64,000 bases of DNA. Source: Podarcis bocagei (taxonomy: Eukaryota). Position 1 is the first letter of the stretch. Every line of letters begins with the position of its first letter. Shown here piece by piece: positions 4,590 through 43,187 of this stretch. The notes beneath the pieces are model-generated. The model had not been told where the DNA came from, searched no databases, and saw nothing but the letters and a program-made list of their open reading frames with translations. A program made the position numbers and the translations under genes. The stretch lies in NCBI GenBank assembly GCA_964188305.1, contig OZ076888.1, one strand, 5' to 3'.

Positions 4590-4804
4590 AGTAGATAGGT
4601 AGCCGTGTTGGTCTGCCATAGTCAAAATAAAAAAATTCCTTCCAGTAGCACCTTAAAGACCAACTAAGTTAGTTCTTGGTATGAGCTTTCGTGTGCATGC
4701 ACACTTCTTCAGATATCTGAAGAAGTGTGCATGCACACGAAAGCTCATACCAAGAACTAACTTAGTTGGTCTTTAAGGTGCTACTGGAAGGAATTTTTTT
4801 ATTT
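4590..4804. mobile_element. Penelope-like element terminal-repeat fragment in head-to-head inverted form (perfect palindrome 4622-4807)
   Basis: 93-bp perfect arms centred on GATATC (4712-4717); 14-bp TSD TGAGGATTTTCAGT at 4576-4589 and 4805-4818; family assignment from recollection of squamate Penelope terminal sequences. Confidence 0.75.
4714..4749 (+). ncRNA. Minimal hammerhead ribozyme motif (mirror copy on minus strand, 4680-4715)
   Basis: UAU-CUGAAGA-A-[GUGUGC AU GCACAC stem II]-GAAA-GC-UC-AUA; predicted cleavage after C4746. Confidence 0.6.
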
Positions 4805-5477
4805 TGAGGATTTTCAGTGGGACATGGTTGAGGTTTATTAAATGATGGTGCTCCAAGAATGGTTGCAGGAATGGTCTTTTTATTAACACTGGGACTCACT
4901 GGGAACTGAATAAATGGAAGCACTTCTTCACACAGTGTGAATTGACTTTTGGACACTAGCTTAGAGATGGCTTTTAAAAGGATTCTACAACTGCATGGAT
5001 AATGGGTCTATCAATGGATGTTAGCCATTGTAACTAAAGGGAAGCCTCCATGTCCGGGGCGGGGGGAGGGGTATATATCTGGTATATATCTGGTAATCAG
5101 ATTCTGGAGACAAATGGAAAAAGATTGGAAAAAGATTGCTATTGGAAAAAGATTGCTGGACCACACTGGTTATAGATAGCAAGGCGGTTCTTAAACAGAG
5201 GGATGTTCTTGCCACGCTATGGTTGTTCCTAAGCTCACTTGAGTTAGGTCTACAACTTTTGCTCAAGCGTTCAGGGCGGAGCAGATAGAAGTTTGTCCAA
5301 CCAAGCAGAGCACCTTTTTTAAAAAAAAAGATGAACTAATGTCCTAATTCAGTAGAAATCCAATGAAGTTATCAGAACAATGATAACTTTTAGGTAATGA
5401 AATGATTATCTAAAAGAGGGGGGAATGGAATCTAAGCAGTCTGTTTTGCTGAATTTCATCCTGTTTCTTCCTTCCAG

Positions 5478-6478
5478 TGCACCAAGAAATTTCCAGTGAT
5501 GGAATGAGCTGGTCTATTCTAGGCTTGCCTGTCGTTTCTTACCTTGATTCTGGAGAATATATATGCAAAGCAAAAAACTTCCTGGGAGCAACAGAAGCTT
5601 TCATCTCCCTTATCATCACTGACTCAGAAAGCACAGATGACCCCACCACAAACTCAAAAGGGACATGGAATGGAAAAGTGAGTGGGATGGAAGCAGCGGC
5701 TTACAACGACAATTTGGTAGCCAGGTACGTGATCACCACGTCAACTTCCCCTACCATGGGTGCTCGGTCCATTCGTGCCAACACAGAAGGGAACCTGGCA
5801 CTTCGAGATCAGGCACTAAATATGATCAACAACCCAAGAAATCTCTTAGCGAGTCCGCCTACTGCCCAACAGGAACCAGAGCGCATTGTGAGGTCTGTCA
5901 GAGTCATAGGAGATACCGACCACAGTGTCTCCTTGGCATGGAAAGCTCCTCAAGCCAAGAACACAACCGTCTTCAGCATCCTTTATGCGATCTTTGGAGA
6001 AAGGGACATGCGTAGAATCAATGTGGAGCCAGGTAAGACCAAGATCACTATCAATGGCTTGATGCCGAAGACCAAATATATAGTGTGTGTCTGTGTGAAA
6101 GGGCTGATTCCCAGGAAAGAGCAGTGCATCATCTTTTCCACGGATGAAGTAGCCAGTGCAGGTGGAACCCAGAAACTTATCAATGTTGTGGTCATCAGCG
6201 TGGCCTGTGTCATTGCCGTCCCTCTGACGTTAGTGGTGTGTTGCGGGGCGCTGAAACGGCGCTGCAAAAAATGCTTCACCCGGAAACCCAAGGAAATCCA
6301 GGACTCTTACGTCACCTTTGAAAGCCTCTCTCCAGGCGCCAAAGCCAAAGGAATGGAAGGTGAATACTTGACTAGACACACACCTGACGAATCCAATCGG
6401 TTGCTCTCTGCCAGGTCGAGTGTGGACTCAGAAGCAATACCAAAGGCAGAGGGACAGCCGAATGAGTACTTTTGCTGA
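5478..6478 (+). CDS. LRIT1: LRIT1 last coding exon (end of Ig, linker, FN3, TM, cytoplasmic tail ending NEYFC)
   Basis: ttccag|TG CAC; DSGEYICKAKNFLG Ig motif; FN3 VRVIGDT..LAWKAP..LMPKTKYIVCVCVKGL; TM LINVVVISVACVIAVPLTLVVCC; RLLSARSS and EYFC-stop typical of LRIT1. Confidence 0.96.
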
Positions 6479-19253: not shown

Positions 19254-19495
19254 CAGTGGTACCTCGGGTTAAGTACTTAATTCGTTCCGGAGGTCTGTTC
19301 TTAACCTGAAACTGTTCTTAAACTGAAGCACCACTTTAGCTAATGGGGCCTCCTGCTGCTGCTGTGCCGCCGGAGCACGATTTCTGTTCTCATCCTGAAG
19401 CAAAGTTCTTAACCTGAAGCACTATTTCTGGGTTAGCGAAATCTGTAACCTGAAGCGTATGTAACCTGAAGCGGATGTAACCTGAGGTACCACTG
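19254..19495. mobile_element. Tc1/mariner MITE (CAGTGGTACCTCGGG TIR)
   Basis: TA-flanked TIRs, internal AACCTGAAGC repeats. Confidence 0.85.
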
Positions 19496-19549
19496 TAATG
19501 GATTAAAACCAACTAAGCAACATGTTAACTTTGCTGTTTTGCTTTCTAG

Positions 19550-20331
19550 GAGTTTGCTTTGCATGTCAACATCATTGAGAAAGATCCCTGGGGGCATCCC
19601 TGATGATATGAAAAAAATTAGAATAGAAAATTCTCACCTAACAGAATTGCCTCGTGGGTCATTCTCTAATGTCAGTGCCTTGGAATATCTTTGGCTTAAT
19701 TTCAATAACATCACGGTCATGCATCTGAAAAGCCTCGAGTACCTGACGGATTTGACTGAGCTGAGATTGCAGGGGAACAAGCTGACTTCAGTACCATGGA
19801 CAGCGTTCCAAGACACGCCGGCTTTGAAAATACTGGATCTAAAGCACAACAGGCTCGATGTCCTTCCAGAACATGCCCTCCGCTACCTGCCTAGCCTGAC
19901 CTATTTAGACATCTCTTCCAATCAGCTTACTGTCATCTCCAAGGATGTTTTCAATAACTGGCCTGTGTACCAAAAAACCCAGCAGCTGGAGAAGAAGCTA
20001 GATGCTATTTCCAACGCGGTCTTGGCTTTGCATGACAACCCCTGGATATGTGACTGTCGCCTGCGAGGGTTTGTCCAGTTTATCAAATCTATTAGCCCAC
20101 CCATCATTCTGATGAATTCTTACTTAACTTGCTCAAGCCCCAAATTCAGAGCAGGAAAGTACTTTCATGAAGTGGAGCTGAATAACTGCATGAAGCCGTT
20201 GGTATCACCCTCTGAGCCAAATCCCACTGTATATGTTGGGCTGAATGTGACCTTGACCTGTCTGGTGCAGGCCAGCCCTTCCCCAGCAATCTGGTGGACC
20301 TATATGTTAAAGCACCTACGAGGATTTAATG
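19550..20331 (+). CDS. LRIT2: LRIT2 exon 2 (LRRs, LRRCT, start of Ig)
   Basis: ttctag|G AGT TTG; [46 protein letters not shown]; donor G|gtaag. Confidence 0.96.
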
Positions 20332-20844
20332 GTAAGCATTACTCCAAGGAAAGTTATATTCATTTGCCTCTGAACTTCTAGTCAGGGGCTGACCGCAAAC
20401 CAGTTAAGCTGAGTTAGCCCACTGGATTCAATGAGACTAAACTGCCTTATTCACTTTTTTGTGAATAGGCTGCCACTTACCAAATAGAAAAGGTGGGTGA
20501 AACGTGGACAAACATTGTGTGATATTATATGAGTATAGCCAGTCAGATTCTTGTTAAAAAATCATGTTGATTTAGGAGGGCTGAAGTATTAGATACCTTC
20601 ACCACCAGTCCCTTCTCTGCCTATTATGTCTATATTCCACCTTTCCTATAAGAAGCTCAGGGTAGCATGCATTGTGCCCTCCCTCCATTTTGTTCTTACA
20701 ACATTTCTGTGTCCCTTCCCTCCATTTTGTTCTTATAACATTTCTGTGAAATTGACTGGCAAAGGGATAGCAACTGGACAAGATCACTGAATGAGGTTCA
20801 TGGTTGAGTGTGGCTTTGAACCTGGGTCTTCTCAGTCCTGTTTG

Positions 20845-25745: not shown

Positions 25746-25888
25746 AAGAATAACTGAAACCATTGCAATTTTCAAGGAATTTCTGCACATATCTATGTTG
25801 TTCTGAGGCTTGGATCATGCTGTTAAAACATCAGGGGAATGCCGGTACAACTAACTTGTGTGTCCTTATTCTCCTTCCCCCTCCCTAG

Positions 25889-26688
25889 CATCCACCACCC
25901 ATATTAGTGAAGACAGAATTAAGTCAGAATTGATTATTCCTTCCACCCACCTTGTGGATGAAGGCAATTACACATGCACAGCTGCTAACTTCCTTGGCAA
26001 CACCTCAGCCACAATGATGCTGAAAGTTCAAGCTCCAAGGGCGGCGGCCTCCTCCTTCTCTTCCTCAGTCTCAGGTGAGAATTCATACATCGATGTGAGG
26101 ATTGCCAAGCAGACGGTCTATGGGATCACTTTGGAGTGGTACAGCTTGACAGAGAATCCAGGGGAAGCCTGGTATACCCTCCATTTTGGGAAGTATGATG
26201 ACTCTAAGAAAGACATGATATACATTGGCCCCGGCATCAATAGCTACTCTGTCAACGACCTTCTCCCTGCCACCAAGTATGAAGTGTGTGTTACTCTGAG
26301 GAACCAGGTGCCTCAAAAGGGGCAGTGCATTGTGTTTGTTACAGGAAGTGACATCAGCGAGCTGGAGCAGCGAGAGAAGCTCATCCATATCATCATCATT
26401 GTATGTGCCATGGTGCTCGCAGTCCCTGCTGGGATGTACGCATGTACCACCGAGACCAGGTTTAATTGCATGGAGAAATGTGCCGACCTCTGCCGCCAGA
26501 GCAGGAAAGGGCAAAATCTTCGGGGGGTCAATAAAGAGAACACGTTTGACAGTTTGCCAACAGGCAGTGAAGAGGGGCTGTGCCACCGAGACTCCAGTGA
26601 CGACAAGAAAAAGCTGAAGTCTTGCGAGGACAAGGAGAAGGCCAACAAGCAGAAACCCGAGCACAGAAATAGCGCTGATCTCTATTAG
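25889..26688 (+). CDS. LRIT2: LRIT2 exon 3 (end of Ig, FN3, TM, cytoplasmic tail)
   Basis: ccctag|CA TCC; DEGNYTCTAANFLGN; IDVRIAKQTVYGITLEW; YIGPGINSYSVNDLLPATKYEVC; TM LIHIIIIVCAMVLAVPAGMY; joined CDS 113+782+800=1695 nt, 564 aa. Confidence 0.96.
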
Positions 26689-35904: not shown

Positions 35905-36456
35905 CTAAATGTGAGGGCTTGCCGCATTTCTCATTTCAAACCTCTGCTTGAGCTCCGACACCAGGGCATTATGGGATGTGCAGACCGCGGCACCTTTCTT
36001 CGCCTGCTTTTTAATAATCTTCGGACTCAGCGATCCGGATACTGTGGGGACCCTCCATTCAGAGACATTAGTCTTGAGTGCCGGGGCAGGAGGTAGGGCT
36101 GGAGCAGCAGGTGGTGGAGGAGGAAGGGGCACCTGGAAGTTGTTGTTGCTGTTCTCATTTTGCAGACTTTTGGTATCCTCTTCGACGACAAACTTCTCTG
36201 CAGCATTGCTGGGCCTCTTGAATTTCAGCCACTCCATTCTGATCATCCTGGTTGGTTGGTGGTTCTGCCTTTTTTTAATGATCCGTCTCACGGGCATGAT
36301 TTTGTTGGACCTCTTATTGCGCCAGAACATGGCGGTGGAGATTAAGATGGTGATGGCCACCATCACCCCCATGACACCAGCTAGCACTCCTAAGGCTTTC
36401 ATGGGGTTATCTTTTGTTTGCATCAAAAAGGCAGCCATAGGCCCTTTGTGAAGAGT
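35905..36456 (-). CDS. CDHR1: CDHR1 canonical last exon (TM plus long proline-rich cytoplasmic tail)
   Basis: ttttacag|ACT CTT; PMAAFLMQTKDNPMKALGVLAG..ILISTAMFWRNKRSNK..VPTVSGSL..LVSELKQRFE. Confidence 0.96.
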   Translation of the reverse strand, partial: TLHKGPMAAFLMQTKDNPMKALGVLAGVMGVMVAITILISTAMFWRNKRSNKIMPVRRIIKKRQNHQPTRMIRMEWLKFKRPSNAAEKFVVEEDTKSLQNENSNNNFQVPLPPPPPAAPALPPAPALKTNVSEWRVPTVSGSLSPKIIKKQAKKGAAVCTSHNALVSELKQRFEMRNAASPHI

Positions 36457-36828
36457 CTGTAAAAGAGTACAAAGAGAACATGGTGACTTAACTCTGGGGC
36501 ACAGAGAGAGAGAGACTGCACTTTCATTTGTCCAAAATATGTGATCCACACCACCAAGCCACCTCCAATTTGGCATCCAAAATTCAGATTTAACACTAAG
36601 AAGGCCAACTGCAGCAATTAAATAGTGGAGCCTTTCACTCAGGATGTGGGGAGTTTTGCATCATTCCTATGCAATACTCTATTGTCCGTCGGTTGCAAGT
36701 GGAAACAAAACCACTGGGTTGTGCAGTCAAGGACATACCCATACAACAAACCGGTGACAACAGTCATTCCCTATTCTCCGAGGAACCCTGGAAATTGTAG
36801 TCCTGTTAGAATGGACACCAGGGATCCC

Positions 36829-37068
36829 TAACCAGGCAGAGGGCCTTCTTGGTAGTGGCACCTGCTCTGTGGAATGCTCTCCAATCAGATGTCAATGAAA
36901 TAAACAACTATCTGACTTTTAGAAGACATCTGAAGGCAGCCCTGTTTAAGGAAGTTTTAAATGTTTGATGTTTTATTTTGTTTTTAATATTCTGTTGGGA
37001 GTCTCCCAGAATGGTTGGGGAAACCCAGCCAGATGGGTGGGATATAAATAAATAAATAAATTATTATT
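36829..37068 (+). mobile_element. L2 LINE 3' fragment
   Basis: Same L2 3' sequence and tail. Confidence 0.85.
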
Positions 37069-37527
37069 GTCATGAACACCCATAAACCAAAATGTCTCTG
37101 ATTCTTTGGGGAAAGCTGTCACAGTTAAAACTGGTATCAAACTGAGATAAACTCAGTATATATCCATAACTGGAAGGTGTTCCTTTTGCTTTAGATTTCA
37201 TTTCAGAATCTCCCAGAATCAAACAAATGCTTTCAGAGAAAATACTAGTAATAAGATTTTCTCATCCTATTGATGCATCTTCAACTGAAAACATTTTGAG
37301 GCTGTCAAATCGGTTCTTAAACAGCCGAAACTGAGCATGTTCTAGTACTCTTTTACAGACGTTACAAAAACAAAACAAACCACTCCAATGCTATGAGGTA
37401 ATGAATCTGAGATGAAGAGACAGGCTGTTTGTTTCCCTTTTAAAGAATCCAAAGCTTGATTTAGAGGTAATGCAGCCTCTCAATATGGCATATTGAGGAC
37501 AAATGAATGAAAAGTTCGCATAGCATT

Positions 37528-37740
37528 TTAGCACACAGAGCGCTGTGGTAGTCGTCGTTTAATTTTCCTGATTTTTCCCTGAGGATGGAGTCTGGATCTT
37601 TTCACACTTTTCCAGTACATGATGGTGGAGATCACCATGGTAACAGAAATGGCAGAAAGGACGCCACTCGTGCAAATCCCAAATAATGTCCATGGATGTT
37701 TCTTGAGGCCTAAAATATAGGATCTTACCCTTGATTTGAT
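37528..37740 (-). CDS. CDHR1: Putative alternative (duplicated) CDHR1 terminal exon: TM plus short basic tail, 70 aa
   Basis: Pyrimidine tract and acceptor ttttcttatttttgacattttcag|ATC, phase 0 matching the upstream exon; IKSRVRSYILGLKKHPWTLFGICTSGVLSAISVTMVISTIMYWKSVKRSRLHPQGKIRKIKRRLPQRSVC-stop; aligns with the canonical exon (ISTIMYW vs ISTAMFW). Confidence 0.8.
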   Translation of the reverse strand: MKSRVRSYILGLKKHPWTLFGICTSGVLSAISVTMVISTIMYWKSVKRSRLHPQGKIRKIKRRLPQRSVC

Positions 37741-38403
37741 CTGAAAATGTCAAAAATAAGAAAACCAATCAACCTGTGGACCACCGTCATAAAGGAAACA
37801 TTGGATGCATTGGTTGCATCCAGTGTAGTGCAAAGTACCTCATTCTGTCAGTGCAAGGATGTCTGCTTGTGGGACACAACTTTCTCCTCCCTCCCTAAAT
37901 ATGTTTTGGGATTCCTCCCAACCCCCTGCGACATATTTGGGGAGGGCGTGGGGTGAACACAGGCAAGAGAACGGGGAGGGAGTTCTGTTGTGCAAGTGGA
38001 AATCCCCACACTGCCAAAATACATTGGCAGGTAACTGAAGCAGATAATTTAATTAGACAGTGCCTATATGATATCGAGCAACAGAACAAATTGGCCACCA
38101 TAAGGAAATTTTGTCCATTGTATGATTATTTCCCACCTAGTCATCTTGACACTTTGGCACCCTATTTGCAAAATTTAACAATTCCAAAATATACAGATGC
38201 ACTTTTACTTATGCAAGATTAAATACCGGTATACTGCCTACAGCTGTGCTTGAGGGTCGATTTCAAAAAAATCTGCGGGGGGAAAAGGCTATGTCCATGT
38301 GGAGAGGGCAGTATTGAATCATTAGCTCATGTGCTTCTAGCTTGCATTCTGTATAAAGATTTGAGGAGTGAGGTTATTACCCCTCTACTACTATCCCTAC
38401 CAG

Positions 38404-40808: not shown

Positions 40809-42932
40809 TATTCACCTGCCTGTGCACTAAGATCATCTTTGGATGTCCTCCCCCAGGTACCCCGCCATCTGATGCAAGGCATGTGGCAACTGGGAAGAGG
40901 GACTTTTCCAGAAGACTAAGCAGACAGAGCCAGGCTGCCTCCCAAGCCTACACAAGTGTAACATGTAGCTCGTCTCTGAATGAACCTTGTTCTTATCCAT
41001 TTATGTTCAGGGCAGAGGGTTAGGTAGCCACCCCTTCTAATCTTGTGGACTATAGAGAAACTTTTGCAAAACTATTGGTGTGCTCTGTCACTGCAATGAT
41101 CAGTCTTTCCATTCCAGGTCAGGGAAATCTAGGACTACGTATTCTGTCATAAAAAAAATACCTGTAATCAAGAATAGGGGGAAGCAAACAGCATATGCAC
41201 TTCAGCACTTTCCCCCCAGTGGGTATGAAAGAAAGCGTTGGCTTATAATCAATATCCCCCCCCTTTTTTGTAAAAATAGGATCCGTTAAATTAAATAGTC
41301 TTGGGATTTATTTATTTTTATCACTGCATTGTTTCAAGAGCAAAAGGTTTTTTTGATGCATGAAACCACCAAACCTAGCCGCAGGGCATTCATCTTGAAG
41401 GGAGCATTGTTCTGGCATTGTTCTGCTAATTGTGATGGTAAATGTTAATCAAAAATAGGCCTGTTTAATTGCTCATTGTGATTAACACTGCTGGACACCT
41501 CTAGTTCTGTTGTCAAAAAAGCTTTTCCTTCAGAAAGGAAAACAGAGCACTGTTCTGCGGGATGAAGAATGCCGGGTCAGACACAATGGAAGAGAAACAG
41601 ATGCATTCAAGTACATCCTGGGGCACAGTATACAAAGAGAATGCCTTATTTGCATGCCACTAGCTTCGATCCTGCCATCTCCAGTTGGAAATGATTCCCA
41701 GTGTAGTATATGCTAACCCTTTTCCTCCTGTAAAAAGGTCACAAAGAGGGAGAGCACAGTCTCAGAGATGGATTCATGTACCATGCAAGCTTAGGGTTCA
41801 TCCACACTTCTGTTTGCTATCGAATTGGAGCAAACATCAGTCAGGTTTTCTCCAGATTGACATTTGCTCCAATTTAGTACAGAAGTGTGGGTTTCCTGGG
41901 GGAAAGCAGTGAGGAAAAGGCCAAACTGCTCGTGGGAGAAGTGGAAATGTGGATAAGACCTATTTACAGGGACTAAGCACCGCTGCAATGAAGGCACAAA
42001 GAGGACAAACTGTCACAGGCTCTACTATAAAGAGACCAAGATATGAAAGCAAGGAACTAAGCTATTGCAGAGGAAATTACAGACAGCATAGCAAAGACCG
42101 GGGAGTTTCAGGTGGACACTTGTAAATTATAAGGTTTTGGGATAATAAAGCTAGATATGGCTGAGGGGGTGGCATTTCAAATCTCTTCACCACCAATTTG
42201 CAATGCTTATTCAAGGGAAATAAATATTCTAGAACAGATGGGTAGCATTCTGTTTGCTGATATTAATTGGCATTAGATCGCTGCATGTCCAGGTTGCCCC
42301 TGCCATATCTATGTGGTCTGCAGGGTATAAGGGAAATGACAGTTTAACGAATCCTCTGTATATGTGAAGCAGATTGACAAGTCTGTCACACACCCCGCAT
42401 TGGACCCACCATCGCAACCATTCTGAAAATATTGTTTGGGAAGTTAAATGTAGTAATAAAGGAGGAGTTATTCTTCTAATGAACCATCTGGAGAATGGTT
42501 GGTAAAATCAAGGGTGAGTTAAGATACAAAGTTAAAAGAAGAAGGACAGATTAGGTGTGGACCTTTAAGACCGTTGTGGTGGGCCTTCATAAATTTCTCC
42601 TTCTCCATTTTCAGTATAGGGAAAGCAATTGTAACTTCTATTTGGTAGCAATGAGGCTGAACAATGCAACAGAGAGGTCAGGGATGGACCCATTGCCAGC
42701 AGCTGAAATGGCTTAGGATCCACTTGATCCTTCGGCAGACTCCACGCTTCCTTGACCCAGAGATGCCAGAAATTCTCATTTCACAGCTGACAGCACTCCC
42801 TTACTTCAATTTAACTTCAACGACTCAAATTATGACGCTACTGCAGCAGTGCCCATTACAAATCACTGTTTCTCAGCCACAAATCTTGGGTCTCCCTGTT
42901 TGCCATTTCTCTCCAGTATCCTATCCCCTTAC

Positions 42933-43187
42933 CTCTTCTGTGATATCAATCTTCAGGACAGCGGTGGTGCTAAATGAAGGAGAGCCCCGATCTTTGGCTT
43001 GAACTACCACCGACCATATGCAGTCTTTGTTGTTGGTGATGTTGTGAATTATGTCCAAGGATCTTATGTAGGATTTCAGTTTTATTTCGCCGGTGCTTTG
43101 GTCTATATCAAACACATTGGCAGGATCTGCTTGCATAATAGAATAGTCAACTATGTTATTGGGTTCTTCCGCATCTTGGTCTATTGC
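42933..43187 (-). CDS. CDHR1: CDHR1 exon (about exon 16; last cadherin repeat)
   Basis: caacag|GCA; [39 protein letters not shown]|gtaagg; 255 nt, phase 0/0. Confidence 0.95.

Follow-up and report, generated by a model that had tools for sequence, protein, structure and literature searches.

Whether the last intron of CDHR1 harbours a second, functional last coding exon, and what might then decide between two alternative ends of the protein, is the question raised by an open frame of 70 codons in a stretch of Podarcis bocagei DNA of 64,000 nucleotides (contig OZ076888.1 of assembly GCA_964188305.1; this whole stretch is referred to as the window). A sequence-only reading of the window had taken the frame for a diverged duplicate of the transmembrane (TM) part of the canonical last exon, maintained by selection and spliced to the same upstream exon. 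Loss of CDHR1 leads to cone-rod dystrophy and retinitis pigmentosa. The explanation put forward in the current work, to which as a whole we assign a probability of roughly 0.8, is that the frame represents an alternative exon, and that the choice between its acceptor and the acceptor of the canonical last exon is tuned by an RNA duplex.

The identity of the host gene as CDHR1 was established from the matches of the canonical-exon profile, from a Cadherin domain encoded upstream and from neighbouring genes of the LRIT type. The profile built on the canonical last exon matches a protein from the frog Pelobates cultripes named 'cadherin-related family member 1', which is 60% identical to the window and whose annotated junction reads KIDVTEE/TLLHKGPMAAF (here and below, a slash marks an exon boundary), as well as a 'CDHR1-like' protein of Lates japonicus and three further sequences (P0125, P0128 and P0131) that are 75-83% identical to the window across this exon. 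The exon at 43187-42933 matches the Pfam Cadherin family with an E-value of 7.6e-9 and shares 64-73% identity with the counterpart exon in 12 fish loci. On the plus strand of the window, long open frames encode LRR, Ig and fn3 domains (5453-6475, 19470-20378 and 25855-26685), which fit LRIT1/LRIT2-type genes lying convergently downstream of CDHR1, and the same neighbourhood is present in one of the fish loci (L002).

The arrangement of exons and splice signals was determined by direct reading of the minus strand (Table 1). The upstream exon ends in GAT ATC ACA GAA GAG/gtaagg (protein ...KIDITEE), with its donor at 42932 and in phase 0. The alternative acceptor consists of a tract, ending in ttcttatttttgacattttcag, that runs straight into ATC AAA TCA AGG at 37740, and the canonical last exon is preceded by ttttacag, starts at 36456 and comprises 183 codons, with its stop at 35907-35905. 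The pyrimidine tract, the AG and the phase-0 frame of 70 codons that joins the exon ending in DITEE were all found as previously described, and the encoded peptide proved identical letter for letter.

Table 1. Positions of the exons, splice signals and putative duplex arms within the window.
Feature	Position	Strand	Basis or remark
Acceptor of the alternative exon (CAG preceded by a pyrimidine tract)	37741..37765	-	Direct sequence reading; acceptor conserved in orthologues
Alternative exon (70 codons), encoding a juxtamembrane linker (extracellular), a TM helix (~37692-37612) and a basic tail of 27 residues	37531..37740	-	
Stop codon TAA of the alternative exon	37528..37530	-	Orthologue stops at the aligned place
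85-codon CDHR1 exon that corresponds to human exon 16 and closes the last cadherin repeat	42933..43187	-	Pfam Cadherin
Canonical last exon, coding part: linker, TM, long tail (polyproline tract, VPTVSG, LVSELK), stop	35905..36456	-	
Conserved intronic block GTCTGTAAAAGAGTAC, putative 5' arm of the duplex	37345..37360	-	168 nt past the alternative stop
Canonical 3' splice site GTACTCTTTTACAG/AC, putative 3' arm of the duplex	36455..36470	-	Positions -14 to +2

Of 6189 stop-free stretches in the window, 232 reach at least 70 codons, so that frames of this size are common; this speaks for a duplicate that has died, or a frame open by chance, without ever being spliced in. The alternative frame itself measures 73 codons from stop to stop. 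As its openness is within what is expected by chance, the case for an exon rests on homology and on conservation, and both the similarity of the alternative exon to the canonical one and its conservation among vertebrates go beyond chance.

With respect to homology, the proposed paralogy between the alternative exon and the TM part of the canonical last exon was upheld by two types of comparison. BLASTP aligned the two in register from the exon start (E-value of 1e-7, 24% identity), and hhalign matched the profile of the alternative exon (A1) to that of the canonical exon (A2) with a probability of 96.8% and an E-value of 2.7e-10, columns 2-59 being aligned with columns 4-61. Landmarks common to both are a proline before the helix, a threonine within it, an IST motif near its end and, following the helix, a basic segment that contains a proline. 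Being adjacent, on the same strand, in the same phase and with homologous products, the two represent tandem duplicated alternative exons, and the alternative exon would stem from an ancient event in which the first third of the last exon was duplicated in tandem.

Conservation was assessed by an exhaustive phmmer search in which the 70-residue peptide was compared to a database of 1.84 billion representatives, yielding 11 relevant intact ORF clusters (E-values of 4e-16 to 1e-7; 43-63% identity), and by a profile search that returned 15 intact ORF clusters, with nine sequences beyond the phmmer set. A word-indexed search with the lizard peptide, whose length window for a 70-residue query leaves out proteins of 745 residues, gave no match, and no 5-residue words were found in common. 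All of the orthologue matches come from genomic or metagenomic contigs, on which they were called as short ORFs that include intron read-through, and the sample comprises ray-finned fish besides the lizard window. Because the called ORFs read through the acceptor, the residues FQ (ttt/c cag) appear directly before IK or VK. In five sequences (P0005, P0009, P0010, P0011 and P0021) an apparently longer tail was dismissed as an artefact, the gene caller having taken the stop codon TGA as W, and for L009/L010 the translation of the contig sequence differs from the database protein.

At least 17 intact orthologues of the alternative exon were thereby identified in contigs of ray-finned fish, always located between the same two exons, and in the 16 contigs retrieved the order, wherever the flanks suffice, is cadherin exon, alternative exon and canonical last exon. 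In all 12 distinct loci a pyrimidine-rich tract ending in (t/c)(t/g)cag immediately precedes [AG]T[CG]AA[AG], and the upstream donor is in phase 0 in each of the nine loci that include it. The exon as read through to its stop encompasses 65-66 codons in fish, compared to 70 in the lizard window. These observations bear on the notion that the frame is an independent nested gene for a single-pass membrane micro-protein, which would agree with the separate ORF given by gene callers and with the nearest neighbours found by a protein language model (ESM Atlas look-ups of both exons returned generic, small single-pass membrane proteins, at low scores). Such a gene is the least credible of the explanations considered, given that its start codon is not conserved, that conservation begins exactly at the CAG acceptor, that what precedes it in the called ORFs is unrelated read-through of the intron, and that in every species the frame agrees with the phase of the upstream donor.

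The alignment underlying profile A1 contains 14 invariant columns, and substitutions across the alternative exon are those of a sequence under purifying selection: each of the 28 pairs has a dN/dS (Nei-Gojobori) below 1, the values ranging from 0.07 to 0.51, and the codon positions differ in the order 2<1<3. Mean amino-acid identity over 55 pairs amounts to 58.6% for the alternative exon, 62.4% for the first 65 residues of the canonical exon and 49.3% for the rest of the canonical tail; the alternative exon is about as conserved as its canonical counterpart and more conserved than the long tail. Two paralogue types can be told apart among the fish loci by their canonical exon, the first being Pampus-like and resembling tetrapod CDHR1, and the second corresponding to the 'CDHR1-like' genes of Xenoophorus and Lates, and the alternative exon is kept in both. 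A dead duplicate or chance frame is very hard to reconcile with a frame, acceptor and stop that are intact in every orthologue, from two teleost paralogues to the lizard, with a dN/dS well below 1, and with a surrounding intron in which, apart from the block described below, nothing else can be aligned. The view of an old duplicate kept by selection is therefore supported, and it appears highly probable that CDHR1 possesses a functional alternative exon in the frame at 37740-37531. Judged from the sequences compared, this exon is at least as old as the bony vertebrates.

The sequence-only reading had doubted that mammalian CDHR1 has such an exon and had regarded it as potentially new, an expectation that the human annotation does not support. 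Human CDHR1 isoform 2 (NP_001165442.1) consists of 745 amino acids and is identical to the 859-residue isoform 1 over the first 680 (PMC6201214). The donor of human exon 16 is located at c.2040+5, so that this exon ends at c.2040, corresponding to codon 680, and the exon encodes 86 residues (PMC5539332), as compared to 85 for its equivalent in the window. The 65 residues by which isoform 2 extends beyond codon 680 (745 - 680), taken together with the position of the end of exon 16, imply that an alternative exon of 65 codons is already annotated. The exon that distinguishes human isoform 2 (NM_001171971) thus occupies the same intron as the lizard and fish exon and is likewise in phase 0, with 65 residues as against 65-66 in fish and 70 in the lizard. 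On the basis of position, phase and length, the alternative exon is very probably the orthologue of the human isoform 2 exon.

In a literature search no study was found on the expression or function of the short CDHR1 isoform, nor any report of RNA structure in CDHR1, and in the functional CDHR1 literature that was found the protein is handled throughout as a single, long-tail isoform. The exon is probably not new, and it is the conserved complement of the canonical acceptor, described below, that appears to be undescribed in the searchable literature.

When spliced to the exon that ends at 42933, the alternative exon would attach the same six-repeat ectodomain to another juxtamembrane linker and another TM helix, followed by a tail that is short and basic. 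The predicted linker is extracellular and approximately 16 residues long, and the Kyte-Doolittle maximum over 19 residues is 2.01 for the alternative helix versus 2.58 for the canonical helix. The tail contains 11 K or R among its 27 residues and no D or E. The short form would be devoid of the polyproline tract, VPTVSG and LVSELK, and would retain nothing of the long tail beyond the juxtamembrane basic segment. The SVC at its C-terminus had been suggested to act as a class I-like PDZ ligand. Among the sequences compared SVC is found in the window only, the orthologues ending in PVP, AVP, PV, QIS, IK, IKN, VK, LK, AK, HKP, RRL or PAP, and no conserved S/T-X-hydrophobic C-terminus (class I PDZ) was found across them; since the last residues are not conserved, the idea of a PDZ ligand fails.

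For the long form of zebrafish, a Siah1 degron has been reported from residue 857 (PMC7719784). This residue falls within the long tail by position, so that the short form should be without the degron. Strong expression of CDHR1 has been described in human skin and keratinocytes (PMC3688712), and the role of the short form could be situated outside photoreceptors and need not be retinal. Selection on the exon in both teleost copies and in the lizard suggests that the short form has a separate job.

One ectodomain combined with alternative C-terminal ends is also a property of PCDH15, a cadherin-related protein of sensory cells in which alternative 3' exons specify the cytoplasmic domains CD1, CD2 or CD3. 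In contrast to PCDH15, the switch in CDHR1 replaces the juxtamembrane linker and the TM helix itself, and the alternative tail is limited to approximately 22-27 residues and does not contain a conserved C-terminal motif.

The manner in which the short transcript ends was considered next. Upstream-terminal-exon switches such as those of calcitonin/CGRP and of secreted versus membrane IgM need a regulated poly(A) site following the upstream exon. CDHR1 resembles these systems in that an upstream, stop-bearing exon competes with a downstream terminal exon for a single donor, and differs from them in that no conserved poly(A) hexamer follows the upstream exon. No conserved AATAAA or ATTAAA was found after the alternative stop, three loci (L002, L006 and L009) having none at all; the two poly(A) hexamers of the lizard occur in no fish locus, and hexamer positions are inconsistent elsewhere. 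A conserved donor was not found after the alternative stop either. A plain model in which the alternative exon has its own poly(A) site was accordingly dropped as the default. The missing conservation of both signals implies that the short mRNA may keep the interval and the canonical exon as its 3' UTR, in which case the event would be one of alternative 3' splice site use within a composite last exon; a poly(A) site that is lineage-specific is possible.

A stop located upstream of another exon, with no conserved poly(A) signal after it, is also what would be seen if the exon were a 'poison' cassette that merely supplies a stop for nonsense-mediated decay and whose peptide is irrelevant, and such exons are often flanked by conserved intronic elements. 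For that purpose a stop alone would do, yet 65 codons are under purifying selection in frame, with the hydrophobic helix, an invariant proline (P16), the IST motif and the basic stop-transfer segment all kept, the stop is always placed at the end of the homologous module, and no conserved donor follows. A poison cassette is for these reasons considered improbable.

Alignment of the inter-exon stretch from four related fish revealed several conserved non-coding blocks, among which is GTCTGTAAAAGAGTAC. In the window this block (read from 37360 to 37345) matches, at every position, the reverse complement of GTACTCTTTTACAG/AC, the canonical 3' splice site (36470 to 36455). In the nine loci scanned it is positioned 49-168 nt after the alternative stop, and together with the acceptor of its own locus it can form 13-21 uninterrupted base pairs, one of them a G-U pair in fish, since fish acceptors read GTGC. 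The helix is extended to 19-21 bp in several lineages, the extensions being lineage-dependent. A single internal mismatch is present in each of L011 and L012, the helix is limited to 13 bp in L009, and the element is partly degraded in L015/16. Among exact non-coding words of at least 15 nt, the block alone is common to the lizard and fish intervals, as seen in 8 of 10 comparisons.

The pairing of the block was recovered by several procedures. An inverted-repeat search independently returned arms at 36445-36470 and 37345-37370 of the window (26 nt, 85% complementary) and corresponding pairs in four fish loci (L001, L002, L005 and L007). Each locus was furthermore scanned in 30-nt steps against its canonical acceptor in order to retrieve the best duplex partner; the block was the best partner locus-wide in 10 of the 15 loci and the second best in one more, with duplex energies of -25 to -39 kcal/mol as opposed to a background of -7 to -10 (sd 3-5). 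RNAalifold, applied to an alignment of 1107 columns, predicted the block/acceptor helix as its sole helix, 169 of 176 cells being paired. In mononucleotide shuffles the same stem length was reached in 0-1 of 300 per locus, and in 11 of 300 for L009, a modest result. The acceptor arm is moreover the most conserved of three acceptors compared: identity at positions -20 to -1 over 11 lineages is 75% for the canonical acceptor, 54% for the alternative one and 43% for that of exon 16. Conserved complementary arms of which one overlaps a splice signal, as expected of a long-range duplex that controls splice-site choice, are present at this locus.

A different function for the block, namely that of a 5' splice site for the alternative exon, was rejected, because TCT/GTAAAA fits U1 at just four positions and because the 16-27 nt that are conserved extend far beyond what a donor needs.

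The proposed choice follows from a geometry in which two acceptors face one phase-0 donor and a conserved complement to the downstream acceptor is located shortly after the upstream exon. Once transcribed, the canonical acceptor would pair with the block, whereby its pyrimidine tract, its AG and the first two bases of the exon would be hidden. Masking of the canonical acceptor would allow the upstream acceptor to compete, generating the short form, and melting or covering of the block would favour the long form. That acceptor choice is tuned by this conserved RNA duplex is, considering the sequence evidence at hand, about an even bet. Somewhat more tentative is the wider proposal that the intronic 16-mer, unaltered since lizards and ray-finned fish shared an ancestor, serves as an RNA switch which hides the canonical acceptor and thereby selects between paralogous anchor/tail modules.

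The principal competitor of this duplex accepts the exon as real and has the block act without pairing, for instance through proteins that bind it as a splicing or 3'-end element. Several of the results can be read in its favour. No compensatory double changes were observed among the 16 core pairs (the covariation term of the RNAalifold alignment being -0.06), the UGUA and purine-rich run of the block could bind proteins, and the stem is degraded in L015/16 though the exon there is intact. In folds of the whole interval the helix belongs to the minimum-energy structure, with a probability of approximately 1, in 5 of 10 loci, and in the remaining five it is equalled or outdone by local hairpins, which are ahead by 1-4.6 kcal/mol in three loci and by 0.9 in one; for L011 the enforced fold is slightly lower. 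With regard to covariation, the core of the duplex is invariant, which leaves the covariation test without power, so that what argues for pairing is conservation and complementarity. A perfect reverse complement of a splice site, 16 nt long and held at a fixed place from lizard to fish, would nevertheless be a large coincidence if no pairing took place, the acceptor arm is far more conserved than the neighbouring acceptors, and nine one-sided changes keep the pairing by means of G-U, with some of the helices reaching the lengths given above. A block that acts without pairing is thus deemed rather unlikely, though less so than any of the alternatives to a functional exon discussed above.

RNA structure is known to direct the choice between homologous exons in other genes, as exemplified by the docking and selector sites of Dscam exon 6, exons 7a/7b of human ATE1 and exons 6A/6B of chicken beta-tropomyosin. 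In common with these, CDHR1 has tandem paralogous exons and a conserved intronic complement to a site near one of them. It is distinguished from them by having a single complementary pair, no competing selectors and no covariation; inverted-repeat scans of seven loci gave one common pair and none of the competing selectors of a docking/selector system. Because one arm in CDHR1 is the 3' splice site itself, the expected action of the duplex is masking rather than bridging, and because the upstream exon carries a stop, exclusivity is built in.

Should the duplex-tuned choice be correct, the balance between isoforms could be shifted by variants that affect the block or the alternative exon and that are ignored by diagnostic panels based on the main transcript. 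The conserved block would then offer a testable handle on isoform choice and a defined non-coding target for variant interpretation.

A number of further elements were observed within the inter-exon interval. In six fish loci (L001, L002, L006, L007, L012 and L013) the sequence TCAGTCC(C/A)(A/T)TGGA occurs approximately 25-45 nt before the canonical acceptor; this could be a branch-point region, and it is not obvious in the window. In 'CDHR1-like' fish, the 3' end of the alternative exon (GKIRK codons, CAAGATCAGAAAG) is complementary to an intronic block, CTCTGATCTTG, located ~285-310 nt downstream, the pairs being 4798-4823 with 5109-5134 in L001, 2197-2213 with 2498-2514 in L007 and 203-224 with 533-554 in L006. 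The CTCTGATCTTG block is absent from the lizard and is conserved in L013 and L011 too.

The lizard interval contains a second inverted repeat on the minus strand (37489-37507 with 36523-36541; 19 nt, 89% complementary), the arms of which lie 22-40 nt past the alternative stop and 67-85 nt before the canonical acceptor. This repeat and the main duplex would cross each other in a pseudoknot-like manner; no counterpart was observed among the fish loci, and chance may account for it. Both this repeat and the pairs of the 'CDHR1-like' fish are lineage-specific and form no part of the proposed model. In the interval between the two exons the loop measures 888 nt in the lizard versus 369-572 nt in most fish. 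On the minus strand at ~36860-37075, the window has, on visual impression, the look of an interspersed repeat, with an (ATTT)n run, an ATTAAA and an AATAAA, and this apparent repeat would account both for the long loop of the lizard and for its only poly(A)-like hexamers.
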